DNA of 64,000 nt, taken from the NCBI GenBank assembly GCA_002269645.1, contig NIVC01000575.1, positions 434,001-498,000 on the forward strand. Direction: 5' to 3'. The position numbers and the translations under genes were made by a program. Positions 234 through 59,333 of the stretch are shown here, one piece after another; positions within the stretch are counted from its first letter, which is position 1, and each line of letters starts with the position of its first letter. This DNA comes from Macrostomum lignano (Eukaryota). The notes beneath the pieces were generated by a model that saw only the letters and a list, made by a program, of their open reading frames with translations, was not told the DNA's origin and ran no database searches.

Positions 234-18198
<17,965 letters not shown>

Positions 18199-18506
18199 CC
18201 AAAACAGATCTGCTGGAGCTTCAACTGCAGCCGAGAGCGCCTCGTGAAGAATTGAATTGCGTTTTTTTCATATTTCATATTTTGGTTATGCTTATGCAAT
18301 TTTATACATTAATTAATATTCCTACTGATGAAGACTGCTTCTGCTAGTTTATGAATTTAAGAACCCTCTGTTCAGTAGCAATTCATGTTTAGTCCATATG
18401 TTAGTCTTGAATATTAAGCTTAACGAATGTCCATGTTCCATATTTATGAATTTATGAATTTCAACATTTGTTGCATGTACTGCTCTCAATAACTCTTCAC
18501 GCATAG

Positions 18507-18726
18507 TACACCTTTTCAAGTTCAATTTCGATCGGGGTCCAGTTCTAAAACAACTGGCGGAAATTCAATTCAGACTGAGGATAATTTTGTCTATGGCTAA
18601 ACCTTACTTCGGTCAGAATGTTTTGAGCTGGGGTTAGACTGGGCCCAGTCTAAATTGTCTGAATTGAATTTCCGCTAGTTTTTTTTGGAACTGGACTTTG
18701 ATCGAAATTGAACGTGAAAAGGTGTA
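18507..18726. mobile_element. MITE-like element with about 70-bp terminal inverted repeats and TA flanks (copy at 28609-28827)
   Basis: TA|CACCTTTTCA...CAGAC (18507-18575) is the reverse complement of GTCTG...TGAAAAGGTG|TA (18657-18726). An internal perfect 20-bp palindrome TTAGACTGGGCCCAGTCTAA lies at 18634-18653. Confidence 0.65.
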
Positions 18727-18747
18727 GAAACTTATTAATCTCTCGGC

Positions 18748-19765
18748 ACACCGGAAATGCCGCTAATCCATCTCCCAACAAACGGAAATGCCACTTATCC
18801 ATCTCCCAAAACACCGGAAATGACGCTAATCCATCCCAAAACACACCGGAAATGCCGCTAATCCATCTTCAAACACACCGGAAATGCGGCTAATCCATCC
18901 CAAAACACACCGGAAATGCCGCTTATCCATCTCCAAAAACACCGTAAGTGCCGCTAATCCATCTTCCAAAACACTGGAAGTGCCGCTAATCCATCTTCAA
19001 ACACACCGGAAATGCGGCTAATCCATCCCAAAACACTCCGGAAATGCCGCTTATCCATCTCCCAAAACACCGGAAGTGCCGCTAATCCATCTCCCAAAAC
19101 ATCGGAAGTGCCGCTAATCCATCTCCCAAAACACCGGAAGTGCCGCTAATCCATCCCAAAACACATCGGAAATGCCGCTAATCCATCTTCAAACACCGGA
19201 AATGCGGCTAATCCATCCCAAAACACACCGGAAATGCCGCTAATCCATCTTCAAACACCGGAAATGCGGCTAATCCATCCCAAAACACACCGGAAATGCT
19301 GCTAATCCATCTCCCAAAACACCGGAAGTGCCGCTAATCCATCCCAAAACACACCGGAAATGCCGCTAATCCATCTTCAAACACCGGAAATGCGGCTAAT
19401 CCATCCCAAAACACATCGGAAATGCCGCTAATCCATCTTCAAACACCGGAAATGCGGCTAATCCATCCCAAAACACATCGGAAATGCCGCTAATCCATCT
19501 TCAAACACCGGAAATGCGGCTAATCCATCCCAAAACACACCGGAAATGCCGCTAATCCATCTTCAAACACCGGAAATGCGGCTAATCCATCCCAAAACAC
19601 ACCGGAAATGCCGCTAATCCATCTTCAAACACCGGAAATGCGGCTAATCCATCCCAAAACACACCGGAAATGCCGCTAATCCATCTTCAAACACCGGAAA
19701 TGCGGCTAATCCATCCCAAAACACACCGGAAATGCCGCTAATCCATCTCCCAAAACACCGGAAAC
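18748..19765. repeat. 30-32-bp minisatellite CCGGAAATGCCGCTAATCCATCCCAAAACACA (copy at about 28849-29866)
   Basis: About 32 units with alternating variants. Confidence 0.95.
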
Positions 19766-20484
19766 GCAGCGGCATATGATTTGCATATTAATAAAAAATT
19801 GCATACGAATACAGCGCCAAGTCACTAAATTAACATTTGTCTTTCATTTTTGCCGCAAAAAGCAGTTGTTTGCCGCTGCATCACTAATAATACGCGTACT
19901 CTGTTATAAGCATAATTATGATTAATCTCGTATAAACCACTACTTGTGCTGCTATTTGCATGTGGAAAGGATCAAAAACTTATTATTTCACAGGTACAGT
20001 ATGATGAGCATTGTGCATGCATGAGTACAATTATAAATTAATAAACGCATAGGAATTAAGCGCCGAAGTTAAAATATTGAAGAATATGGGCAATAACAAA
20101 TTGCCACGTTTCTCCATTTTTATTTGACAGCAATTTATGACAGTATATATATGTTTACTCAAGTTACATATATACTGATATATCTGCATTAGTTTACGCC
20201 AATATTTATTAGTGCATGTGCACTTTTGAGACAAATAAATTATAGGAAGCCGCGACCACCTGCCCGCCTCCAATAAATACATAATCGAGGGCAAAAATCA
20301 GAGTTAATGACAACTGGAATAAAAAGTTAATAGAAGACCAAAATAACTAATTTGTTTGAATAAGCGATGTCGCTGGACATTTGTTATAACCAGCAGGGGT
20401 AAATAAGTTGAAAATTATAAAAGAAAACAAATCCTTTGTTACTGAAACTGCATAAATTTATTGTCATAAATATATATAAGAGTA

Positions 20485-21020
20485 CCATATCTTTCACACC
20501 TGTCCCCTTATCTTTGACACCTGTCCCCTTATCTTTGACACCTGTCCCCTTATCTTTGACACCTGTCCCCTTATCTTTGATACCTATCCCCTTATCTTTG
20601 ACACCTGTCCCCTTATCTTTCACACCTGTCCCCTTATCTTTGACACTTGTCCCCTTATCTTTGACACCTGTCCCCTTATCTTTGACACCTGTCCCCTTAT
20701 CTTTGACACCTGTCCCCTTATCTTTGACACTTGTCCCCTTATCTTTGATACCTGTCCCCTTATCTTTGACACCTGTCCCCTTGTCTTTGACACCTGTCCC
20801 CTTATCTTTGACACCTGTCCCCTTATCTTTGACACCTGTCCCCTTATCTTTGACACCTGTCCCCTTATCTTTGACACCTGTCCCCTTATCTTTGACACTT
20901 GTCCCCTTATCTTTGATACCTGTCCCTATATCTTTCACACCTGTCCCTATATCTTTCACAGCTGTCCCTATATCTTTCACAGCTGTCCCTATATCTTTCA
21001 CAGCTGTCCCCTTATCTTTC
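20485..21020. repeat. 21-bp minisatellite GACACCTGTCCCCTTATCTTT (copy at about 30586-31121)
   Basis: About 25 units. Confidence 0.95.
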
Positions 21021-21217
21021 CCGCATTTTCAATGACGGACTAATCGTTTACAGTAGATAGGAAGCTAACCTATAATATAGTATTTAGAAAGCATTACTAA
21101 TAGTAATTAAGAATTGACTGAATAAAAACATAGCCAATAACAAGGCGGAGAGCTGAAGTATTACACTGTTAATTTAATTAATCGGTATGATTAATATTAT
21201 TGAATCAACCAGAAGTG

Positions 21218-31305
<10,088 letters not shown>

Positions 31306-31319
<14 letters not shown>

Positions 31320-31791
31320 CGGCCGCGGTCCCGCTAGCACTAGCCGCCGACGGCTTAGCCTCCAGCCGGATGTGCAAAGCAGATTTCAGTCGCTGCCGCT
31401 GCTGCTGCCCCTGGGCGTCCTCATTCAGCTCGTGCAGCAGTCGGTCTGTACAAGCTACGGTGGAGGTGTACACAGCCGGCTGGCTGGTCAGCTCATCGGC
31501 CAGCTGCAGGGCCAGATTGGCCGCTCTGGGCACAGCGGCGCCGAGCCCGTGCACCCAGCACAGGTGAGGCGGCCGGCGGAGCAGCCTGCGGCAGCGCAGC
31601 AGCTGGGCTGGGAAGTTGGTTCGCTTAGTCACGTAGACATCGAATCCGCGCTGCGGCAGGCGGGGAGGCAGGCAGGAGATCAGGCGGGACTCCTCGGCGT
31701 CCATTAGGTCGGCTAGGGGATTCTCTTTGGCCGCGGCGGCTGCGGCGTCGGGAGTCGGCGAGGTGGCGACGGGCTTGGCTGATGAGCTCAT
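31306..31791 (-). CDS. POP7: Ribonuclease P/MRP subunit Rpp20 (Alba-like), intronless
   Basis: LPPRLPQRGFDVYVTKRTNFPAQLLRCRRLL...WVHGLGAAVPRAANLALQL...TSTV...RLKSALHIRL matches the Rpp20 pattern. The first ATG (MSSSAKP) is at 31791. Confidence 0.9.
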
Positions 31792-31898
31792 GCCGAGTGC
31801 AACGATTCTAAGAGTTGATGGATTGATTATCACTGGGGATCAATGGAGATTATTTGGAACTGTTTATGATTTTCGGTAGACACTCGGGACACCAGAAT

Positions 31899-32899
31899 TC
31901 ACAGGGTGCCTCTTGGAAGACTGAACGATAGGCGATCGCCAAGCTCGCCCCAGGTGGGCCGGTACACCTGCGGGGGTTGCGACGGAGAGTGCGGGTGGTT
32001 TAAGAAATTCTGCAATAGATCAGAGAGCAAGAGATTAGATTAGGGGGAGAGATCAGAGAGCAAGAGATTAGATTAAGGCGAGAGATCAGAGAGCAAGAGA
32101 TTATATTAAGGCGAGAGATCAGAGAGCAAGAGATTATATTAAGGCGAGAGATCAGAGAGCAAGAGATTATATTAAGGCGAGAGATCAGAGAGCAAGAGAT
32201 TAGATTAAGGCGAGAGATCAGAGAGCAAGAGATTAGATTAAGGCGAGAGATCAGAGAGCAAGAGATTAGATTAAGGCGAGAGATCAGAGAGCAAGAGATT
32301 ATATTAAGGCGAGAGATCAGAGAGCAAGAGATTATATTAAGGCGAGAGATCAGAGAGCAAGAGATTAGATTAAGGCGAGAGATCAGAGAGCAAGAGATTA
32401 GATTAGCGAGAGAGATCAGAGATCAGAGAGCACGAGATTAGATTAGCGAGAGAGATCAGAGATAACGAGATTAGATTAGCGAGAGAGATCAGAGATCAGA
32501 GAGCACGAGATTAGATTAGCGAGAGAGATTAAACCAAGGGAGAGATCAGACATCAAGCTATAGACTGGGCAGTGGTTACTAAAGGAAAGATCAAATAGAA
32601 TAAGAGACCAATGGTATATATAAAGTTAAAAACTATAAAGACTAAAAAAGCATTGCACACACCTGATACACGCAGAACCAGGTAAGCAGTGCCACAGTCC
32701 AGATGGCGCTGCCAATGCCGCTAATAATAACCAGACGCCGGATCTGCGCCTGTTCCGGATAGGCCGGCGCTAGGAAGGCCTCGCGAAAAAACCAAGCAAA
32801 GTTGGTTAGCCAAAGGAATGGCAATAGGAATGCGCCGCCGATAGTGTATTTGCGACAGATGTTGAGCTTGTCAGCACCGCTAGCCTTAGATAGATCCAT
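31899..32899 (-). CDS. PSENEN: Gamma-secretase subunit PEN-2; exons 32899-32663 and 31967-31899
   Basis: MDLSK...KLNICRKYTIGGAFLLPFLWLTNFAWFFREAF...YPEQAQIRR is joined by a phase-0 GT/AG intron to VYRPTWGELGDRLSFSLPRGTL*. Confidence 0.93.
32015..32530. repeat. About 33-bp minisatellite in the PEN-2 intron
   Basis: GAGAGATCAGAGAGCAAGAGATTAGATTAAGGC units. Confidence 0.93.
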
Positions 32900-32929
32900 G
32901 CGCCTGCGGGAGTGGCGGCGCCGGCGGCT

Positions 32930-33740
32930 TAGGGGCGATGCTCATGGATGTTTCGGGGCGATGCTCATGGATGCTTAGGGGCGATGCTCATGGATGCTTA
33001 GGGGCGATGCTCATGGATGCTTAGGGGCGATGCTCATGGGTGTTTAGGTGGACGATTCTCATGGATGCTTAGGGGCGATGCTCATGGATGTTTAGGAGGA
33101 CGATTCTCATGGATGCTTAGGGGCGATGCTCATGGATGCTTAGGGGCGATGCTCATGGATGTTTAGGAGGACGATTCTCATGGATGCTTAGGGGCGATGC
33201 TCATGGATGCTTAGGGGCGATGCTCATGGATGTTTAGGTGGACGATTCTCATGGATGCTTAGGGGCGATGCTCATGGATGTTTAGGTGGACGATTCTCAT
33301 GGATGCTTAGGGGCGCTGCTCATGGGTGTTTAGGTGGACGATTCTCATGGATGCTTAGGGGCGATGCTCATGGATGTTTTGGGGCGATGCTCATGGATGC
33401 TTAGGGGCGATGCTCATGGATGCTTAGGGGCGATGCTCATGGATGCTTAGGGGCGATGCTCATGGGTGTTTAGGTGGACGATTCTCATGGATGCTTAGGG
33501 GCGCTGCTCATGGGTGTTTAGGTGGACGATTCTCATGGATGCTTAGGGGCGATGCTCATGGGTGTTTAGGTGGACGATTCTCATGGATGCTTAGGGGCGC
33601 TGCTCATGGGTGTTTAGGTGGACGATTCTCATGGATGCTTAGGGGCGATGCTCATGGGTGTTTAGGTGGACGATTCTCATGGATGCTTAGGGTGATTCTC
33701 ATGGATGTTTAGGGTGATTTTCATGGATGTTTAGGGGCGA
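32930..33740. repeat. 23/25-bp two-unit minisatellite between RPL13A and PEN-2
   Basis: TTAGGGGCGATGCTCATGGATGC and TTAGGTGGACGATTCTCATGGATGC units. Confidence 0.95.
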
Positions 33741-33956
33741 TCCTACTAAGCCTAAATACTAAAAAGGAAACAAAAAAGAAGAAACACAAAAGACGACAAA
33801 CTGTTCAGCGTATTTTGTAATTTTTTTACTCCAACACGAGCGGCACAGACACTTGTCTCTATCGACACACAGAAGTTTCAGTCTGCGAGTCTGTCAGCAA
33901 TCATGACGCACTGTCACAATTCGAATCTCTAAGAATCCATTCACAAATCCAGCCGT

Positions 33957-35369
33957 TCACTTGTGCCCGTAGGACTCGATAATCTTCTGATACTTGGCCA
34001 CCCGATCCTTGACCTTCTCGACGGCCTTGGAGCGAAGCTGGCGGTCGCGCAGCTGGCGCTTGTGAAAGTGAGCCGATTTCACCTTGCGCCTGCGCTCCAG
34101 GGTGCCAATTACGCCCTGGTATTTCCAGCCGACCTCGTGCGACAGGCGGCCGAGGACGCAGAACTTGCGGCGGGTCTTCAGCCGGAGGCACTTGAGCGCC
34201 GACGGCACCACCTGACGCTTGGCCTTGTCGTAAGGGCTGGGGATGCCCTCGAACACCTGGATGTGTGTGACGGCGGGTGTTGCGAAGCGATGGTGATACA
34301 ATTTCGGAGGAATCCGGGAGGGGATGCTAAGGATGGAGAATCGGGGAATTAAGAGATGCTGAAGATGGAGAACAGGGGAGGGGAATCTGAGGATGGAGAA
34401 TCGGAGAGGGGATGTAGGTGTTGGAGAGCCGGGGAGGGGAATCTGACGATGGAGAATAAGAGAGGGGATGCAGGTGATGGAGAGCCGGGGAGGGGAATCT
34501 GAGGATGGAGAATCGGAGAGAGGATGCAGCTGATGGAGAACAGAAGAGGGGAATATAACGATGGAGAATAAGAGAGGGGATGCAGGTGATGGAGAGCCGG
34601 GGAGGGGAATCTGATGATGGAGAATCGGAGAGGGGATGCAGGTGATGGAGAGCCGGGGAGGGGAATCTGACGATGGAGAATCGGAGAGGGATGCAGGTGA
34701 TGGAGAGCCGGGGAGGGGAATCTGATGATGAATCTGACGATGGAGAATAAGAGAGGGGATGCAGGTGATGGAGAGCCGGGGAGGGGAATCTGAGGATGAG
34801 AATAAGAGAGGGGATGCAGGTGATGGAGAGCCGGGGAGGGGAATCTGAAGATGGATAATCGGAGAGAGAAGGCAGCTTATGCAGCTGATGGAGAACCGGG
34901 GAGGGGAATCTGAGGATGGAGAATCCATGAGGATGGAGGATGGGGATGGAGGGGATCATGGATGGAGGGATGAGGATGGAGGGGATGATGCGGATGCAGA
35001 ATCGGAGAGGGGATGCAGCGGATAGAGAATGGGGCCAGACATGGAACAGCTGCTCACCTTCAAACGGTCAAGAGCCTCGGCGCCCCTGGCGAGCTTGTGC
35101 GGCAGCATGCCCCGCACGGTGCGCCAGAAGATCTTAGACGGGGCGCGGAAGTGGTACGGTCCCCGACTGGGTTTAGTGTTAAGCCGCTTGCGCAGAAACT
35201 CGTGGTAGCGAGTCTTGTTGCGAAAGAAGGAGCCGGATATGTTGATGCCCTCGCAGCGGACAACTACAACCCGCTGGCCGAGGAGCAGCGTCTTGGCGAC
35301 CACGGCAGCCAGACGGCCGAGAAGGTGGCCGCGAGCGTCGATAATCAACGGGCTGGATTTGAATCCCAT
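33957..35369 (-). CDS. RPL13A: 60S ribosomal protein L13a (uL13); exons 35369-35058 and 34256-33957
   Basis: [18 protein letters not shown]...[23 protein letters not shown] is followed by a phase-0 intron and [11 protein letters not shown]...[12 protein letters not shown]. Confidence 0.96.
34330..35030. repeat. Purine-rich minisatellite in the RPL13A intron
   Basis: GATGGAGAGCCGGGGAGGGGAATCTGA and GATGGAGAATCGGAGAGGGGATGCAGGT units. Confidence 0.9.
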
Positions 35370-35529: not shown

Positions 35530-38120
35530 CCAGAGGATAAGCCACAGGACCAATAGGAGAAGGCGGGTAAGCCACAGGGCCAATAGGAGAAGGCGGGTAA
35601 GCCACAGGACTAATAGAAGGCGGGTAAGCCACAGGACCAATAGGAGAAGGCGGGTAAGCCATAGGACCAATAGGAGAAGGCGGGTAAGCCACAGGAACAA
35701 TAGTAGAAGGCGGGTAAGCCACAGGACCAATAGAAGGCGGGTAAGCCACAGGACCAATAGGAGAAGGCGGGTATGCCACAGGACCAATAGAAGAAGGCGG
35801 GTAAGCCACAGGACCAATAGAAGAAGGCGGGTAAGCCACAGGACCAATAGGAGAAGGCGGGTAAGCCACAGGACCAATATGAGAAGGCGGGTAAGCCACA
35901 GGACCAATAGGAGAAGGCGGGTAAGCCACAGGACTAATAGGAGAAGGCGGGTAAGCCACAGGACCAATAGGAGAAGGCGGGTATGCCACAGGACCAATAG
36001 GAGAAGGCGGGTAAGCCACAGGACCAATAGAAGGCGGGTAAGCCACAGGACCAATAGAAGAAGGCGGGTAAGCCACAGGACCAATAGGAGAAGGCGGGTA
36101 AGCCACAGGACCAATAGGAGAAGGCGGGTAAGCCACAGGACCAATAGGAGAAGGCGGGTAAGCCACAGGACCAATAGAAGGCGGGTAAGCCACAGGACCA
36201 ATAGAAGAAGGCGGGTAAGCCACAGGACCAATAGGAGAAGGCGGGTAAGCCACAGGACCAATAGGAGAAGGCGGGTATGCCACAGGACCAATAGGAGAAG
36301 GCGGGTAAGCCACAGGACCAATAGAAGGCGGGTAAGCCACAGGACCAATAGAAGAAGGCGGGTAAGCCACAGGACCAATAGGAGAAGGCGGGTAAGCCAC
36401 AGGACCAATAGGAGAAGGCGGGTATGCCACAGGACCAATAGGAGAAGGCGGGTAAGCCACAGGACTAATAGGAGAAGGCGGGTAAGCCACAGGACCAATA
36501 GGAGAAGGCGGGTATGCCACAGGACCAATAGGAGAAGGCGGGTAAGCCACAGGACCAATAGAAGGCGGGTAAGCCACAGGACCAATAGAAGAAGGCGGGT
36601 AAGCCACAGGACCAATAGAAGAAGGCGGGTAAGCCACAGGACCAATAGGAGAAGGCGGGTAAGCCACAGGACCAATATGAGAAGGCGGGTAAGCCACAGG
36701 ACCAATAGGAGAAGGCGGGTAAGCCACAGGACTAATAGGAGAAGGCGGGTAAGCCACAGGACCAATAGGAGAAGGCGGGTATGCCACAGGACCAATAGGA
36801 GAAGGCGGGTAAGCCACAGGACCAATAGAAGGCGGGTAAGCCACAGGACCAATAGAAGAAGGCGGGTAAGCCACAGGACCAATAGGAGAAGGCGGGTAAG
36901 CCACAGGACCAATAGGAGAAGGCGGGTAAGCCACAGGACCAATAGGAGAAGGCGGGTAAGCCACAGGACCAATAGAAGGCGGGTAAGCCACAGGACCAAT
37001 AGAAGAAGGCGGGTAAGCCACAGGACCAATAGGAGAAGGCGGGTAAGCCACAGGACCAATAGAAGGCGGGTAAGCCACAGGACCAATAGAAGGCGGGTAA
37101 GCCACAGGACCAATAGGAGAAGGCGGGTAAGCCACAGGACCAATAGGAGAAGGCGGGTGGGTAAGCCACATGGCCAATAGGTGAAGGTGGGTAAGCCACA
37201 GGACCAATAGAAGGCGGGTAAGCCACAGGACCAATAGGAGAAGGCGGATAAGCCACAGGACCAATAGGAGAAGGCGGGTAAGCCACAGGACCAATAGGAG
37301 AAGGCGGGTAAGCCACAGGACCAATAGAAGGCGGGTAAGCCACAGGACCAATAGGAGAAGGCGGGTAAGCCACAGGACCAATAGGAGAAGGCGGGTAAGC
37401 CACAACACCAATAGGAGAAGGCGGGTAAGCCACAGGACCAATAGAAGGCGGGTAAGCCACAGGACTAATAGGAGAAGGCGGATAAGCCACAGGACCAATA
37501 GGAGAAGGCGGGTAAGCCACAGGACCAATAGAAGGCGGGTAAGCCACAGGACCAATAGGAGAAGGCGGGTAAGCCACAGGACCAATAGGAGAAGGCGGGT
37601 GGGTAAGCCACAGGGCCAATAGGAGAAGGTGGGTAAGCCACAGGACCAATAGAAGGCGGGTAAGCCACAGGACCAATAGGAGAAGGTGGATAAGCCACAG
37701 GACCAATAGGAGAAGGCGGGTGGGTAAGCCACAGGGCCAATAGGAGAAGGTGGGTAAGCCACAGGACCAATAGAAGGCGGGTAAGCCACAGGACCAATAG
37801 AAGGCGGGTAAGCCACAGGACCAATAGGAGAAGGCGGGTGGGTAAGCCACAAGACTAATAGGAGAAGGCGGATAAGCCACAGGACCAATAGGAGAAGGGG
37901 GTGGGTAAGCCGCAGGACCAATAGGAGAAGGCGGGTAAGCCACAGGACCAATAGGAGAAGGGGGTAAGCCACAGGACCAATAGGAGAAGGCGGATAAGCC
38001 ACAGGACCAATAGGAGAAGGCGGGTGGGTAAGCCACAGGACCAATAGGAGAAGGCGGGTGGGTAAGCCACAGGACCAATAGGAGAAGGCGGGTAAGCCAC
38101 AGGACCAATAGGAGAAGGCG
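35530..38120. repeat. 2.6-kb 27/30/34-bp minisatellite GTAAGCCACAGGACCAATAGGAGAAGGCGG
   Basis: Roughly 85 units between KARS and RPL13A. Confidence 0.98.
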
Positions 38121-39106: not shown

Positions 39107-42100
39107 TCAACTTTCGTGATTAGCACTAGCGGCCGCCGCGGCCGAACCGGAGCTCTCAGTGTTGGCCTCCGGTTTCATCGCCGGGAAGAACAGCACCTCC
39201 TTGATGTTGTTGGTGTCGGTCAGGAACATAGCAAGCCGGTCCAGTCCCAGACCCCAGCCGGCAGTTGGCGGCAGGCCCATCTCTAATGCGCCGAGAAAAG
39301 TCTCGTCAACAAACATGGCCTCTTCGTCGCCTTGCGCTTTAGCAGCAGCCTGGGCTTCGAATAGCTGGCGTTGCACTATGGGGTCGTTCAATTCCGTATA
39401 GGCGTTGCAAATCTCGCGTCGGCAGGCGAACAGTTCGAAGCGTTCCGTCAGGCCTGGGATGGACCGGTGCCACTTAGCCAGGGGAGACATGATCTGGCAA
39501 TGGGGATGCGCGCGATTCTGTGCCGCAAGACTCAATTCACAGTACGTAAGACAGCATCTGAATTGCACGGTTCAAGCTAGCGCCTTCTTAACCATAAGTA
39601 CCTTGGGATGCCCGCTACCCCTCCCTCATCAGTACCTCTGATGCTTGAGAATGCCCGCTACCCCTAATCAGTCCCTCTGATGTTTGAGCTGCCTTCTAAC
39701 CCCCTCATCAGTCCCTCTGATGCTTGAGAATGCCTGCTAACCCCCTCATCAGTCCCTCTGATGCTTGAGAATGCCTGCTAACCTCCTCATCAGTCCCTCT
39801 GATGTTTGAGAATGCCTGCTAACCCCCTCATCAGTCCCTCTGATGTTTGAGAATGCCCGCTACCCCTAATCAGTCCCTCTGATGCTTGAGAATGCCCGCT
39901 ACCCCTAATCAGTCCCTCTGATGCTTGAGAATGCCCGCTACCCCTCATCAGTCCCTCTGATATTTGAGCTGCCTTCTAACCCCCTCATCAGTCCCTCTGA
40001 TGCTTGAGAATGCCTGCTAACCCCCTCATCAGTCCCTCTGATGTTTGAGAATGCCTGCTAACCCCCTTATCAGTCCCTCTGATGCTTGAGAATGCCTTCT
40101 AACCCCCTCATCAGTCCCTCTGATGTTTGAGATGCCTGCTAACCCCCTTATCAGTCCCTCTGATGCTTGAGAATGCCCGCTACCCCTCATCAGTCCCTCT
40201 GATGTTTGAGCTGCCTTCTAACCCCCTCATCAGTCCCTCTGATGCTTGAGAGGCCTGCTAACCCCCTCATCAGTCCCTCTGATGTTTGAGATGCCTGCTA
40301 ACCCCCTCATCAGTCCCTCTGATGCTTGAGAATGCCTGCTAACCCCCTCATCAGTCCCTCTGATGCTTGAGAATGCCTGCTAACCCCCTCATCAGTCCCT
40401 CTGATGCTTGAGAATGCCTGCTAACCCCCTCATCAGTCCCTCTGATGCTTGAGAATGCCTGCTAACCCCCTCATCAGTCCCTCTGATGCTTGAGAATGCC
40501 TGCTAACCCCCTCATCAGTCCCTCTGATGCTTGAGAATGCCTGCTAACCCCCTCATCAGTCCCTCTGATGTCTGAGATGCCCGCTAACCCCCTCATCAGT
40601 CCCTCTGATGTCTGAGATGCCCGCTAACCCCCTCCCTCATCAGTCCCTCTGATGTCTGAGATGCCCGCTACCCCTCAGGTATCAATCGCTAATAAAATGA
40701 ACTCACCTGCGGATGGTTAATCAGGAAAGTGGGATTAACACACTCAGTCTCTAAGAAGTCGCCAGCCAGTTTGTCCAACAAGCGGGGCACTGTCCTGGGC
40801 GGCTGGCATTCTACGTTGCGCTCAACACAAAGCCGGTCGAATAGAGCCCTGTTAATCGGGGTCAGGGAGACTGGCATACAGGTATGTTTAAGATTAAGAG
40901 ATTAGGGGATAAAAGGTGATCAGTAAAATGTAATAGAGACAATAAAGCATTGCTAATGAAGCAGTGTTAAAGGAAGGGTTAAGAGCTAGAGTGAATAATG
41001 GAAAAGTGAAGGGTCATGATGAGTGAGTGAAAGATCTGGATGAAGGGTGAGGGTGAAGGGTCTGGATAAAGGTAAAGGGTCTGGATGAAGGGTGAGTGTG
41101 AAGGGTCTGGATGAAGGGTGAAGGTGAGGGTGAAGGTGAGGGTGAAGGTGAGGGTGAAGGGTCTGGATGAAGAATGAGAGTGCAAGATCTGGATAAAGGG
41201 TGAGGGTGAAGGGTCTGGATGAAGGGTGAGAGTGCAAGGTCTGGATAAAGGGTGAGGGTGAAGGGTCTGGATGAAGGGTGAGAGTGCAAGGTCTAGATAA
41301 AGGGTGAGGGTGAAGGGTGAAGGGTCTGGATGAAGGGTGAGGGTGAATGGTCTGGATGAAGGGTGAGAGTGCAAGGTCTAGATAAAGGGTGAGGGTGAAG
41401 GGTGAAAGGTCTGGATGAAGGGTGAGGGTGAAGGGTCTGGATGAAGGGTGAGGGTGAATGGTCTGGATGAAGGGTGAGGGTCTGAATGAAGGGTGAGAGT
41501 GGCGGACAGAATATATGGTCAAAACCGCATGCATCAACCTGTCAGTCAAATAAGTAATACCTGGCTTCCTCCGTGCCCAGCGTATCCGGGGGAGGCAGCG
41601 CCACCCCAAGCCGTTTGCCCAGCTCGGCGTACAGATCCAACCGACGGAACGGCGGCGTGAAGTCCACCTCCCATTCCACACCTTCCTCCGGATGATAGAC
41701 GATCTTGTGAGATCCGGTGAGCTCCTTGACTAAGCCGGACAGAAGCTGCTCAGTGATGGCCATGAGATCATTGTAATCAGCGTAGGCCATGTAGAACTCG
41801 CACATGGTGAACTCGGGATTATGAGTCAGGTCGATGCCTTCATTGCGAAATTGTCGGCCAATTTCGTACACCCGATCGAAGCCGCCAACGATCAGCTGTT
41901 TGAGGAACAGCTCGGGAGCGACTCGAAGGTACAGATCTCGGTCAAGCTCGTTGTGATGCGTCACAAATGGCTTAGCAGTGGCGCCGCCAGGGATCACGTT
42001 CATGATGGGTGTCTCAACCTCCAGGAAGCCCATCTGGTCTAGGAACCTGCGCCAGATGAATGAGAGTTAGCACTGTCTTGAAACTGAGTAGCTTTGAGTG

Positions 42101-52604: not shown

Positions 52605-55600
52605 TTAATTGTACCTGGCCATATGGAGCAGTGCGTGCCAGTCGCTGCGACTGGAGCCGTACAGCTCGTGGCACACGGACTTGATGTGCTGACTGCGCCT
52701 CGTGTCCATGCCTGGCTGGTTGCCTCTGTGGTCGAGAATGTTCATCGACGATTCGAATGCGTCGCTGCCTCCGGCTCCGACGGCTTCCACTAAGTGCTGC
52801 TTGTGGTGCACGTCTCTGACGCGATCGTGTGCGAAATCGGCTAGAATGCCGATTGCGGCGGCGCGGTACTCGCGGAGCTGGCGTTTGCCTTCTTCCCCGA
52901 CGTTGTACGCGATGCGACAGGCGTCCAATGAGTAGTCTTCAAAGTTGTGCACCAGAAATCTGAAATGCCAGAAGAACGCTACACATCTACATGTACCCAT
53001 GTTCACTGTTCAGGGTCTCCCAGGGGATGAATTGGGATAAAATGGGAATTTCGTGTCAACGCATGGTTCATCAAATTCGCCTTGAAAGGTTGGAAAACAG
53101 CTCAATGCTCCTTGGATAATTTTTAAGAGAGGGGACACGATAGTGAGATGTCTCGGTCTTTTAATTGACGCATTTGATAAATCATTGATTGCAGATTTTT
53201 ATACATAATTTACTCTACTAAATTAGAAATAAACATTTTCCAACTTACCTCGGCAAATTGCAAGTTAAATCGGTATCGCCAACGTAAATCGGTACTGACT
53301 GGTAGCTGCTGATGTCTACTAAATTGTACATTGGAGCAGTAATCACCTTTTGAACCAGCAGGTGATAAAGAATCGCCTGGATCGGGCAGACAGTTCGAAT
53401 GTCGTACAGAAGCAACCGTCGAACCTCTTCGTAGTCGATATCGTCCTCGTTCACCTCGGCTTTCATCATGTCGACATAGTGCCGAATGATAGCTGACCCC
53501 GTTTTGTGCGCTTGTCGCAGGGCGTAAACGCGTTCTAGCGATCGGCGCAGGCCCGTCTCAACTTTGTAGCGACTCTCGTTCCTCCGACCGGTCGGGAACA
53601 GCGACCAATAATAGCTGCTGGCGATGCTGCTGTAGAACACTACGGATCTGTTAGCCAAAACTAGCTGCTTCTCGCGCAGCGTTGACAACAGGCTCGAGTT
53701 TAGCATCGATGGCGGCAAGTGCAAAAGACTTCGCTCGGTGACCTGCCTGCAGGTAGTAAGGTGATTATGTATGCGTACGAGTATCCACCGTATTAATACA
53801 CTTCTGCCTGAACTTCCTCCACCGAGGTTTTCCCACCGACAGTTTGGGAAATGCTTTCCTAGCTGGGGCAATGCTTTTTACTGAGGAGTTTTCCTAGCTG
53901 GGTGTTTTCCCAAAATATTTTCCCACAGACATTCCCACAGGGTTTTCCCACAGGGTTTTCCCACAGGGTTTTCCCACAGGGTTTTCCCACAGGGTTTTCC
54001 CACAGGGTTTTCCCACAGGGTTTTCCCACAGGGTTTTCCCACAGGGTTTTCCCACAGGGTTTTCCCACAGGGTTTTCCCACAGGGTTTTCCCACAGACTT
54101 TCCCACAGGGTTTTACCGCAGGGTTTTCCCACAGGGTTTTCCCACAGGGTTTTCCCACAGGGTTTTCCCACAGGGTTTTCCCACAGGGTTTTCCCCCAGA
54201 CTTTCCCACAGGGTTTTACCGCAGGGTTTTCCCACAGGGTTTTCCCACAGGGTTTTCCCACAGGGTTTTCCCACAGGGTTTTCCCACAGGGTTTTCCCAC
54301 AGGGTTTTCCCACAGGGTTTTCCCACAGGGTTTTCCCACAGACTTTCCCACAGGGTTTTACCGCAGGGTTTTACCGCAGGGTTTTCCCACAGGGTTTTCC
54401 CACAGGGTTTTCCCACAGACTTTCCCACAGGGTTTTCCCACAGGGTTTTCCCACAGGGTTTTCCCACAGACTTTCCCACAGGGTTTTACCGCAGGGTTTT
54501 ACCGCAGGGTTTTCCCACAGGGTTTTCCCACAGGGTTTTCCCACAGGGTTTTCCCACAGGGTTTTCCCACAGGGTTTTCCCACAGGGTTTTCCCACAGGG
54601 TTTTCCCACAGGGTTTTCCCACAGGGTTTTCCCACAGGGTTTTCCCACAGGGTTTTCCCACAGGGTTTTCCCTATTTTTCCTAAAAATTGTACCATCGTA
54701 CATTTGTCTGTTGATATTTATGATCATAACTCGAATTATTAATGCCAACAGTTTGTTCGCAGGAGGGGACTTTAGAGAGACTTTCTGTCTTAAATAAAGG
54801 AAGCTCAGCGTCTGACTCTCGCTCCAGAAGTACTTAGCTAGGTTCGATTCCGTGTGCGGCCGCATTAACTTGGGGCTTGTGCACAAAAACTGGCATGGGA
54901 CATGTGCAGTGAATTCTCGCCCTCAAAGCACAGAGAGTGTGCATCAACAGACGATGAAGGGGGACCGTAAACTAGTGGTCTGGCGCGGCACTTTTATGTG
55001 CCAGCGGCCTAGGCTCGATTCCAAGTGCAATCACATTAATTTGGGGCTAAATTGGAATCTCGGCTTGGCTCTGCTCGTGCATTGACGCCCGAGGGCCAAC
55101 CCCCCAAGGCGCAGTGAAGTGTACATGCCTAACGATAAATAAAGTTAGGGCCGCTGTACACTCCTGTGTGAGTGTGTGCCTGTGCGTATGACTGCGTACG
55201 TATCCGCGCGCTTGTGTCCCTGCTCAGGGGAGTCGGCGGAATGGGCAGTAATGCCTCTCCCCGGTTGTAACAATGCCGCTTGAAGTGCGCCTGTCTCCTT
55301 GCCGGCTGAGCGACAGATTCTGCAAGCAGCCGGGGCTACCCCGAGCAGAATAGATAACAAACAGCCAGCATGAGACTCACCTCGCCACCTTCTCAGGATA
55401 CTGGTCGAGATATTTGTGCACCTCCGTAAGCCATTGCGGTGTTAACCGAACAACATCTTTTATTGTGAGCTCGCTCAGGCACTTGGCTGGCTTCCTGTGC
55501 TTGAACAGCTTGTAGCAGTCGTCGATTTCTTCTTGGCTCAGATTCGCAGGGAATCGAGGTGGTTTTTCGAGGAAAATGTCCTCAACAATGGAGCCCATCT

Positions 55601-56427: not shown

Positions 56428-59333
56428 ACAAAGAATCACACTGTCTTTCATGTTGCCGAATTTACACATCATCACAATTACTAAGGATGTCTCTTCAACA
56501 CACACGGAAATTGGAATCTATAGCTTAGTATTATTACATGAATGACGATGGAAAATTTTCAACAAATGTGAAATTTAGACGATCTGAAAGCGACCTGAAT
56601 CTGGTGACAGTCCGCTTTCTCCGGCTGCGGTCAGTACAAATCACTAAAACTATGCAATGCGATACAACTATGCTATGTACGATAGCTAAAAGTAGAATCG
56701 AACCCAGTTTAGACGAATTCAAACGATGACTAGGCTATGTAGACTTTCTAATTACATGTACCGTATACCATGCGCTCTCGTATGGCAACATCTCTTTGCC
56801 TACCATGCAGGTTTTTTGCGCTACGCTCTATGCTGTCTACTTATCAGTAGTGCAACTCTGACAGCGATATAATACACACAATGGCTCACCAGAGTCCCAA
56901 AGTACCGCCGGAGCCCTCGCCAAAATAGATGACTCGCTTCGCGTCTCCACCAAAACTATCGATAGTGTGATTAATCCACAGCAGAGCCTGCGTGATGTCG
57001 CGGGCAAACAAATTTCCCATGTAGCTGTCGCGGTCCAGAATAGCCGCGCCGTCTAATCCGATTCGATAATTGACCGTGACAACAACGCAGTCCAGCCTCT
57101 CAACAATACTAGTTGGCGGCATCACCGGCTTGTTGAACACTAGGTCGTTCCCAGTCACTAGCACTAGCACGGGTCTGGTGCCGTTACTTAACTGCGGAGT
57201 GGCAACGCTCAACGACAGGCTCTCGCCGCTGCCAACCGTCTGGGAGCTGCCTGGTCGCCTCAGCTGATGCCGCCAAGCCGTTCTGGCCGAGCGAATCTTC
57301 AGCATAATATCGTAGTCCCAGTAGAATGCTCCGTTTTTAAACGAAACTAGCACTTTCTCTACGGCCAGGTAGTAATGCTTGTAGCATTCCATGAACGTCT
57401 CTATAAAGTTGCTGTCCTCGAAACGGTGAGAGAAGCTCGCGTAGGGAATGTCGTGAAACACCAAGTTCTTTTCCCTCTGTGGGGGTGGGGGTAAAAACAT
57501 TCTGTCTGCCGGGCAACTGCTTGCGAAGTTTAAACTTTGCGCTTAAGTTCAGTGAGAGACGGAAGCAACACTCCCACACCCTCTGGTTTGAAAGAAAACC
57601 TAAAAGCCTGGTTGTTATACAAAACAGACAGGTGTTGCCGAACCATGAGCCATGATCCGTGTAATGTACATTACCCCCTTCTCACACTAACCAACATCTT
57701 ACGATCAGTTGTTGGTTAAGATTTTAAAATGCAGCGATTCATATATAGTTTCGCCGTTTTTTTATTTACACCATTATTTCATTCAATGTGCGATAATAAT
57801 ATTTCAAGATCTGTTTATAATCGTGAAAGAACGAGCAGTGCATGTAGCAGTTCCGAGTGGCAAAGTCCTATAAAAAGGTCTAACCTGAAATTTGCTTTGA
57901 TATGGGTTACGCAGGATAGAAATTTTATTAGATTTTCAGCACTGTTTCAAGGGGATTTACTACTACCAAGACTGCTCAACAAAACAAATGAAAACATTAA
58001 GCTCTTCCTAGGATATCGTTGTGGCCTGGTGTCCGGATTACGTTGATCCTGTTGAGACCAACTCGCCAAACGAGGCATCGCTCGGTCAAGCTACCAACCC
58101 GAAATCCTCCTCCGTCAACAGCGCCAGTCATAAAGGTTGATCCACCAACACTAGCTGCACTAGAACAACTGCTCCGAATAACTGAATAGCTATCGGCAAA
58201 CACGAACGGCAATTATGCCTGTCACAAACCGGAAAGTATCCGAATACCTAGCTAATCTTCATAAGTAAAATTGACTTCAGGGAGAGGTGCATAGTCGTTA
58301 CCGCCATGGCTTCTTCCAGAGACATATTTCACTACAAAGTGGTTGCTCTCCCATTTGCCCCTTTTGTGATCTAGAGGAGGAAACTTCGACGCACCACGTC
58401 ACCTTCTGTCCGCACTTCAACGAAGCTCGGAGACTTCACCTCGCACTGGTTCTGCTGACATCCACTAAGGCTGGACGAACTCACCAACCCGGGACTCCGG
58501 ACTGTTGAAGATTGCAGACGCCACTCTCGCGGGCCTTTTTGCTGCTGGCGAGGGGTGAACGCAGCCCCAAGGCTAATGTCTCTCCTCGACATTGAGACAT
58601 TAAGCTTGTCTTTAGCTTGGATGTTTTTAGCTTGGGGTTGTGATAGTGGCCTCGCAGCCTAATCGCGGCGTTCTGCCCCCCGTGAGTAGTAAGTAGTAAA
58701 TAAGCTCTTTCTAACTCTATAATCTACTGTATTAAGTATACCGGTATATATAGTCAAAATCTGTCGCTAACTTACTGTATCCAGATTTTTTATTACGGCG
58801 CACGGAATGCTCAAATGTTGAAAATCGAAAGTCTGCAGCAGGCGCAGGGTACGATAGTGGCTCCATTGCTGCGTCAGTGACGCAATCAAACTGTGGCTAG
58901 CAATCCACACGGCCACTGTAACGACAACCAACAGGAAGCAGATCTTGCCTTTGAAGCTGTTGCTTTTGGCCAATCTGGTGTGGCAGGACTTCGACATCAG
59001 CAGCTCCCTGGCGCACATGGGCTGCAGCAGAATCGGCAGCGGGATTTTCTTTTTGTCAGTTTCTATATTCTTACTCGCTGAAGTCCCTGAGTCCTGCTGG
59101 GGACTCCGCGGGCTCGGCGTGGCGCTAGCGGTTGAAGCGTCTTTTTCATTCGGTTCATTCAGTTTAAAAGCCACTTTTGCTGTTCTCGATTTGTCAACTG
59201 GGTTTTCTGAACTAACCGGACTATTTTCTTTGGACTCCGAGCTGACACTTTTGAATTGCTGGTCAGAAATACTCTGAGTCGCTTGCTCTGGCTTTTCGTT
59301 TGCTGGTGTTTGGTTGTCTTGAGGTTCGGCCAT
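52605..59333 (-). CDS. Neurotactin-like type II membrane protein with inactive carboxylesterase/cholinesterase domain; exons 59333-58776, 57476-56890, 55680-55381, 53746-53249, 52959-52605 (3' end uncertain)
   Basis: Acidic/Ser-rich N-terminus, then one TM segment ([24 protein letters not shown]), then COesterase motifs [18 protein letters not shown] and [32 protein letters not shown]. The exons join in frame (766 codons). A possible donor at 52615 may lead to a further exon. Confidence 0.8.
53900..54670. repeat. 13-bp minisatellite CCACAGGGTTTTC
   Basis: About 55 units in an intron of the esterase-like gene. Confidence 0.97.
54960..55292 (+). mobile_element. SINE-like family B copy, preceded by a second diverged tRNA-like head (about 54795-54885)
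   Basis: TAGTGGTCTGGCG-GGCAC/GTGCC stem-GCGGCCTAGGCTCGATTCC. The body matches 17045-17350. Upstream is TAGGTTCGATTCC...CATTAACTTGGGGCT. Confidence 0.65.
56108..56427 (+). mobile_element. Diverged 3' half of SINE family B with (ATT)n tail
   Basis: AGGGCCGCTG...TACAC...GTGAG.GTGTG body and CACAGCCC 3' motif, followed by about 155 bp of (ATT)n. Confidence 0.5.
58270..58445 (+). mobile_element. Non-LTR retrotransposon 3' remnant (CCHC zinc knuckle)
   Basis: [29 protein letters not shown], a C-x2-C...H-x4-C motif typical of LINE ORF2 C-termini. It lies in an intron of the opposite-strand gene. Confidence 0.6.

Follow-up and report, generated by a model that had tools for sequence, protein, structure and literature searches.

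The free-living flatworm Macrostomum lignano has spliced-leader (SL) RNA genes and SL trans-splicing, and its operons are the closest described systems to the locus considered here. One 35-nucleotide (nt) leader, CGGTCTCTTACTGCGAAGACTCAATTTATTGCATG, is used and the SL RNA gene has been described (PMC8629364); about 30% of the genes are trans-spliced and about 15% lie in operons. The published operons (Wudarski et al., 2017, PMC5730564; Ustyantsev & Berezikov, 2021, PMC8629364) are mostly two- to three-gene units of conserved housekeeping genes on the same strand with gaps of about 100 bp, and multi-gene precursors make up about 7% of the assembled transcripts (PMC5730564). The repeat-adjusted distance between trans-spliced neighbours has a sharp mode at about 100 bp; repeats are explicitly said to inflate operon gaps, and the operon threshold is a repeat-adjusted gap of <1 kb (PMC8629364). 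The locus compared with these systems contains genes for the ribosomal protein RPL13A (uL13), the gamma-secretase subunit PEN-2 (PSENEN) and the RNase P/MRP subunit POP7 (Rpp20). It lies in a 64,000-nt stretch of M. lignano DNA, hereafter the window (assembly GCA_002269645.1, Mlig_3_7, NIVC00000000; contig NIVC01000575.1, positions 434,001–498,000), and all positions refer to this window.

The SL2-type operons of Caenorhabditis elegans group unrelated housekeeping genes, with about 100 nt from the upstream poly(A) signal to the downstream trans-splice acceptor and a U-rich tract after the upstream poly(A) signal; the locus resembles them in all three respects, the U-rich tract being that of the RPL13A–PEN-2 gap. 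C. elegans has specialized SL1 and SL2 leaders whereas M. lignano has a single one, the flatworm leader in contrast ends in AUG, and intergenic arrays of hundreds to thousands of nucleotides, as found at this locus, are atypical for nematode operons. Operons of parasitic flatworms, for example that of cytochrome b-c1 subunit 7 and enolase (Op8), are likewise SL operons with gaps of ≤300 bp, are often revealed by chimeric gene models and include some pairs that are kept across species (PMC12582326). They differ in the genes that they join, and conservation of the PEN-2/POP7 pair is seen only in Macrostomum-like species.

RPL13A, PEN-2 and POP7 follow one another head to tail on the minus strand in the order 5′-RPL13A–PEN-2–POP7-3′, and the coordinates that an earlier note on this DNA had given for them are correct to the base. 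The same note had proposed a polycistronic unit resolved by SL trans-splicing. For PEN-2 and POP7 this remains the most likely mechanism: the pair probably forms an SL-type operon of the kind known genome-wide in M. lignano, as suggested by three genomic copies, two related species, contigs that span both genes and a chimeric database model. The features that bear on the pair are as follows.

31306–31791, minus strand: POP7/Rpp20 gene (RNase P/MRP subunit), a single exon encoding 161 residues, with the ATG at 31791–31789
31792–31898, minus strand: PEN-2/POP7 spacer, 107 nt, free of ATG
31808, minus strand: end of the TAG of the candidate acceptor CTCTTAG, 16 nt before the POP7 ATG
31833, minus strand: end of the candidate acceptor CCCCAG, 41 nt before the POP7 ATG
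31868–31863, minus strand: CATAAA, a poly(A)-like hexamer in the spacer
31899–32899, minus strand: PEN-2 (PSENEN) gene, 101 residues, with the TGA at 31901–31899
32899–32663 and 31967–31899, minus strand: PEN-2 exons 1 and 2, the latter including the stop codon
32662–31968, minus strand: PEN-2 intron, with a 33-nt tandem array at 32017–32529
32900–32928, minus strand: unique bases ahead of the PEN-2 ATG, with the candidate SL acceptors CCCCTAAG (ending at 32928) and CCCGCAG (ending at 32904)

The PEN-2 product matches PF10251 over residues 10–99 of 101 (E = 8e-33). Its identity is 58% to vertebrate PEN-2 and 54–58% across vertebrate and cnidarian PEN-2. The POP7 product matches the Rpp20 (Alba-like) family PF12328 with E = 1.7e-11, which exceeds the curated cut-off, and its homologues carry the name RNase P subunit p20.

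The 107-nt gap between the PEN-2 stop codon and the POP7 start codon (31898–31792) agrees with the value in the earlier note, as do the CATAAA hexamer and the CTCTTAG acceptor; the CCCCAG acceptor had been missed there. Because this length coincides with the mode reported for pairs of trans-spliced genes in M. lignano (PMC8629364), it is the significant feature of the locus. It is also reproduced elsewhere in the assembly. A KARS–RPL13A–PEN-2–POP7 block, KARS being a lysyl-tRNA synthetase gene upstream, is present three times, in the window (L001), on NIVC01001745.1 (L002) and on NIVC01000426.1 (L008), and the copies are about 90–98% identical outside tandem arrays. Each copy has a 107-nt spacer, which differs from that of the window by one substitution in L002 and by none in L008. 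An intact 101-residue PEN-2 open reading frame (ORF) is likewise present in each (window 31899–32899, L002 8929–9890 and L008 15628–16720).

The synteny comparison that the earlier note had suggested finds the adjacency kept in two other species, represented by Logan-assembled contigs. PEN-2 lies directly upstream of POP7 in species A (SRR28338165/6; identities of 96% for PEN-2 and 76% for POP7, spacer 120 nt) and in species B (SRR30276804/12; 91% and 60%, spacer 101 nt). The three spacers (window 31792–31898, L003 277–396 and L006 299–399) cannot be aligned, and their length has been kept within 101–120 nt. These observations bear on the possibility that the genes are independent and tightly packed, with a compact POP7 promoter overlapping the PEN-2 3′ exon, the intron or the spacer, a PEN-2 promoter in the RPL13A–PEN-2 gap or its array, and no functional shared precursor. 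The 107 nt would then have to fit a PEN-2 3′ untranslated region (UTR), a poly(A) site, a POP7 promoter and a 5′ UTR; the retention of length without alignable sequence leaves no conserved core-promoter motif visible, and the spacing lies on the published operon mode. The contigs of the two relatives moreover run unbroken from PEN-2 into POP7. Against this, one contig (L004) begins 27 nt upstream of the POP7 ATG and lacks PEN-2, and the 215 unique nucleotides and the array of the long and variable RPL13A–PEN-2 gap could house a promoter. On balance, independent transcription of the genes is unlikely.

In both species the relatives' contigs are continuous through PEN-2, spacer and POP7, and they are probably derived from RNA. 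L003 and L006 end 9 and 17 nt past the sole AATAAA or TATAAA of their 3′ regions, as fits poly(A) sites, and three of the relatives' contigs start no more than 100 nt into the PEN-2 coding sequence (CDS); both features favour an RNA origin. If the contigs are indeed RNA, reads bridge the spacer and so join the two genes in two species. The contigs also lack the PEN-2 intron, which was considered and rejected as proof of a cDNA origin: the M. lignano intron is lineage-specific and perhaps absent from the genomes of the relatives.

With regard to this intron, Nematostella PEN-2 is interrupted at codons ∼20/21 and 55/56 and not at 79/80 (L012 6001–7635). M. lignano PEN-2 has neither of these introns and carries a single one at codon 79/80, about three quarters of which consists of the 33-nt array. 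The pattern looks like lineage-specific intron turnover, with the M. lignano intron a gain.

Dicistronic mRNAs that function without trans-splicing are known, for example Drosophila stoned and mammalian SNURF-SNRPN. They resemble the present pair in having two ORFs per transcript and a short ATG-free spacer; unlike the close gene pairs of M. lignano, which the SL machinery normally resolves, they are not processed to separate mRNAs. A mature PEN-2/POP7 mRNA of this type, with POP7 translated by reinitiation or leaky scanning and no SL resolution, would fit several observations. None of the three species has an ATG in its spacer (shuffle P = 0.23, 0.22 and 0.12, jointly ∼0.006, a statistic drawn from just three short sequences), L003 and L006 begin in the 5′ part of PEN-2 and reach the POP7 poly(A) site, and an uncalled PEN-2 would be expected if one CDS was kept per shared transcript. 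Reinitiation after an ORF of 101 codons, the length of PEN-2, is however normally inefficient in eukaryotic translation. The M. lignano spacer has a CATAAA at a suitable distance together with AG acceptors, closely spaced genes of this species are documented to be resolved by SL addition as a rule, and assembly can merge reads of a precursor with those of separate mature mRNAs. A stable dicistronic message is thus improbable. A related and similarly doubtful proposal is that PEN-2 and POP7 form a genus-wide unit in which the spacer is retained in the translated POP7 message, whether this is dicistronic or uses a far-upstream acceptor; such retention would account for ATG-free spacers of 101–120 nt in three species that share no spacer sequence.

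In flatworm annotation, chimeric gene models are taken as signatures of polycistronic precursors (PMC12582326), and one such model exists for this pair. The UniProt entry A0A1I8IIK8 (`Gamma-secretase subunit PEN-2'; 265 residues) contains both a PEN-2 and an Rpp20 domain and is reproduced exactly by excising a 95-nt `intron' from GTGAAT (31902) to TTAG (31808). UniProt holds PEN-2 of this species only in the form of this false fusion, and a homologue search returned no Macrostomum PEN-2. In the GenBank record a PEN-2 CDS is called in none of the three copies (POP7 is also uncalled in L008), as would fit an annotated transcript common to PEN-2 and the longer POP7 ORF.

Taken literally, the database model would describe a genuine PEN-2::POP7 fusion protein, in which cis-splicing of the 95-nt intron (31902 to 31808) removes the PEN-2 stop codon. 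The junction is in frame and of the GT..AG type, and a GTGA overlaps the stop codon in all three species (GTGAG in species B). In species A, however, no AG acceptor yields an open in-frame junction, and the sole in-frame acceptor distant enough from the donor for a real intron, 58 nt before the ATG, leads to a stop codon; the fusion is thus not conserved. The spacer is unspliced in all of the relatives' contigs, and a scan of nine further POP7 homologues with an extended N-terminus, drawn from 1.8 billion representatives searched, revealed no PEN-2 domain. The C-terminus of PEN-2 is functionally important in gamma-secretase, which also speaks against an extension at that end. Since annotation of flatworm operons is also known to produce chimeric models artefactually (PMC12582326), a real fusion protein is very improbable.

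Beyond the Macrostomum-like species no sign of the pairing was found. The only more distant POP7 locus with flanking sequence (L007, 44% identity) showed no PEN-2 by tblastn on its 5.6-kb contig, which includes 2.9 kb upstream of POP7; this result and the nine extended homologues speak weakly against a wider distribution.

An SL-resolved PEN-2/POP7 operon would operate as follows. RNA polymerase II would make one precursor containing PEN-2 and POP7, starting probably at or upstream of RPL13A. The PEN-2 3′ end would form after the CATAAA in the 107-nt spacer, and the 35-nt SL would be joined at an AG shortly before the POP7 ATG to give a capped monocistronic POP7 mRNA. Between the two candidate POP7 acceptors, CCCCAG/TGA at 31833/31832 is slightly favoured over CTCTTAG at 31808/31807, which the earlier note had put forward. 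At 31832 the AUG that ends the leader would meet UGA at once and be harmless, while at 31807 it would begin an out-of-frame ORF of 66 codons that runs across the POP7 start. PEN-2 would receive its SL in the 28 nt that separate the upstream tandem array from its ATG, where AG acceptors are found 4 and 28 nt before the start codon. Every unit of this array contains an ATG, the last of them 46 nt ahead of the PEN-2 start codon, and a translatable PEN-2 mRNA would hence have to begin no more than about 45 nt before its own start codon. The PEN-2 mRNA therefore probably begins in this interval, as trans-splicing would give.

The following features lie upstream of PEN-2.

32927–33741, strand not assigned: 23/48-nt tandem array that makes up most of the RPL13A–PEN-2 gap; the units on the transcribed strand each contain an ATG and two AGs
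33825–33830, minus strand: AGTAAA, a poly(A)-signal-like hexamer of RPL13A, followed by a GU/U-rich tract up to TTTTTAG at 33759
33957–35369, minus strand: RPL13A (uL13) gene, 203 residues, Pfam Ribosomal_L13, with the same CDS in the GenBank record
35369–35058 and 34256–33957, minus strand: RPL13A exons 1 and 2, the latter including the stop codon
35057–34257, minus strand: RPL13A intron, filled by a 28/56-nt tandem array
35538–38120, strand not assigned: 30-nt tandem array of about 87 copies between KARS and RPL13A
39107–42033, minus strand: 3′ part of the lysyl-tRNA synthetase gene (KARS), with the stop codon at 39107 and E = 2e-74 to human LysRS

Whether RPL13A belongs to the same unit was assessed from distance. 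The RPL13A–PEN-2 gap is 1057 nt long, and removal of the 815-nt array leaves 215 + 27 = 242 unique nucleotides; the earlier note's figure of about 260 non-repetitive nucleotides becomes 242 on counting. Both this net distance and the 107-nt spacer are below the repeat-adjusted limit of 1 kb, and a repeat-inflated second gap is a feature shared with published M. lignano operons. The AGTAAA (33830–33825) and the U-rich tract ending in TTTTTAG at 33759 are present as the earlier note described. A GU/U-rich downstream element for cleavage and polyadenylation would be an adequate explanation of this tract, which may possibly double as a polypyrimidine tract with its AG. Membership of RPL13A is thus plausible on the distance criterion and weaker than the PEN-2/POP7 pairing.

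The KARS gene, which extends upstream past 42033, lies upstream of RPL13A on the same strand. The gap of 3737 nt between them comprises a 2583-nt array and 986 and 168 unique nucleotides, so that the adjusted distance of 1154 nt is just over the limit; KARS may be an additional member at the upstream end of the unit. No opposite-strand gene lies between KARS, RPL13A, PEN-2 and POP7, all of which are on the minus strand, and the long ORFs inside the gaps are confined to the tandem arrays. A shared strand for four genes is expected by chance about once in eight cases, so orientation alone is not beyond chance.

An RPL13A transcript of 832 nt (RNA1509_2265, eLife 2016 source data) is flagged TRANSSPLICED, that is, as trans-spliced, and is not assignable to a particular RPL13A paralogue. 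If it comes from this locus, RPL13A may have its own outron and the promoter would lie further upstream. The single shared promoter envisaged in the earlier note would then possibly be located ahead of RPL13A. Searches of the supplements of M. lignano papers for PSENEN, POP7, KARS and Mlig007866 produced nothing beyond this flag, and the RPL13A–PEN-2–POP7 trio was not found by name in the papers and supplements searched. An Rfam scan of the whole window gave no match and no SL RNA gene; comparison of the 35-nt SL with the window and the other loci gave chance matches of 10–11 nt only.

Several observations weigh against an SL-resolved operon, either for the pair or for its extension to RPL13A. 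The GenBank locus tags of RPL13A (Mlig027547) and POP7 (Mlig007866) have different transcriptional-unit prefixes, so the published assembly left the two genes unjoined, as would also be expected if they were transcribed independently. An exact-protein look-up of M. lignano POP7 returned genome contigs only and no transcript-derived contig, and the RNA origin of the relatives' contigs is itself deduced from the positions of their ends. The spacers of the relatives contain no clear PEN-2 poly(A) signal, which would equally suit a dicistronic message, and that of species B is purine-rich (GGAGG-type) and devoid of a polypyrimidine tract. None of the candidate acceptors matches the published acceptor motif [T/C]TNCAG exactly. 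In L008 a CTG stands in place of the CAG found four bases ahead of the PEN-2 ATG, so CCCGCAG cannot be the sole PEN-2 acceptor. Lastly, the RPL13A–PEN-2 gap measures 1057, 1057 and 4473 nt in the three copies, the largest value (L008 11155–15627) arising from array expansion. The PEN-2/POP7 spacer thus looks constrained in length and the RPL13A–PEN-2 gap does not, which tempers the inclusion of RPL13A in the unit proposed by the earlier note. It should also be borne in mind that the published M. lignano set was defined by SL reads and poly(A) peaks, whereas this locus is known from sequence. These points notwithstanding, an SL-resolved operon is the probable arrangement for PEN-2 and POP7.

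Minisatellite arrays also fill both introns and the flanks of the locus. The array upstream of RPL13A varies in length among the three copies, as does that of the RPL13A–PEN-2 gap, and minisatellites here evolve much faster than unique sequence.

With respect to the RPL13A leader, an out-of-frame ATG is found 8 nt upstream of the start codon (ATGCCGCAATGG; window 35377–35369) with no AG between them. The upstream ORF that it begins has 10 codons and overlaps the start, which is unusual in the leader of a ribosomal-protein mRNA.

An intronless RPL13A paralogue is present at positions 10025–10636 of both NIVC01003273.1 (L009) and NIVC01003334.1 (L010), between a gene with a Mat89Bb domain and a protein-kinase gene. 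It is 87.3% identical to the window copy at the nucleotide level, with 71 synonymous and three non-synonymous codon differences and unrelated UTRs; the small number of non-synonymous differences indicates purifying selection on both paralogues. An upstream ATG lies 27 nt before its start codon. The UniProt entry A0A1I8IJI0 (378 residues) contains the RPL13A residues of this paralogue behind a 175-residue N-terminal extension and may be another chimeric, operon-like model. SL-like remnants upstream of two RPL13A paralogues (TGCATG and CAATTT) were not significant (shuffle p ∼0.4–0.5), and a Logan RPL13A contig with an upstream ORF (L011) was uninformative, as that ORF has no Pfam match.

Directly downstream of POP7, a 10.1-kb segment is tandemly duplicated (window 11114–21218 and 21218–31319) and the two units are 99.9% identical. 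Their junction falls within the POP7 CDS, 13 nt from its 3′ end, and the 14-nt POP7 tail and 3′ UTR recur at about 21218, preceded there by a (CTAT)n microsatellite. The unit contains no annotated gene and its ORFs have no Pfam match; either a genuine duplication of recent date or an artefact of assembly could account for it. Upstream of KARS, a minus-strand ORF at 56886–57500 matches the carboxylesterase family (E = 1e-24) and another at 54371–54886 shows weak, sub-threshold similarity to the Pcf11 RFEGP-repeat. The two ORFs probably represent exons of additional genes on this strand.

In metazoans, operons typically bring together housekeeping genes of unrelated function, and the combination of a ribosomal protein, a gamma-secretase subunit and an RNase P/MRP subunit is therefore unsurprising in itself. 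The unusual interest that the earlier note attached to it was overstated, as operons coupling unrelated housekeeping genes had already been described in M. lignano. If confirmed, the locus would add one operon to the roughly 10,000 M. lignano genes already assigned to operons, and it has little significance beyond annotation. There it exposes three problems, namely the missing GenBank PEN-2 CDS, the false PEN-2::POP7 fusion in UniProt and the RPL13A entry with its 175-residue extension. The spacing of 100–120 nt kept across Macrostomum species could nevertheless serve as a small test case for a constraint on intercistronic length in flatworm operons, a test that transgenesis makes feasible in M. 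lignano.

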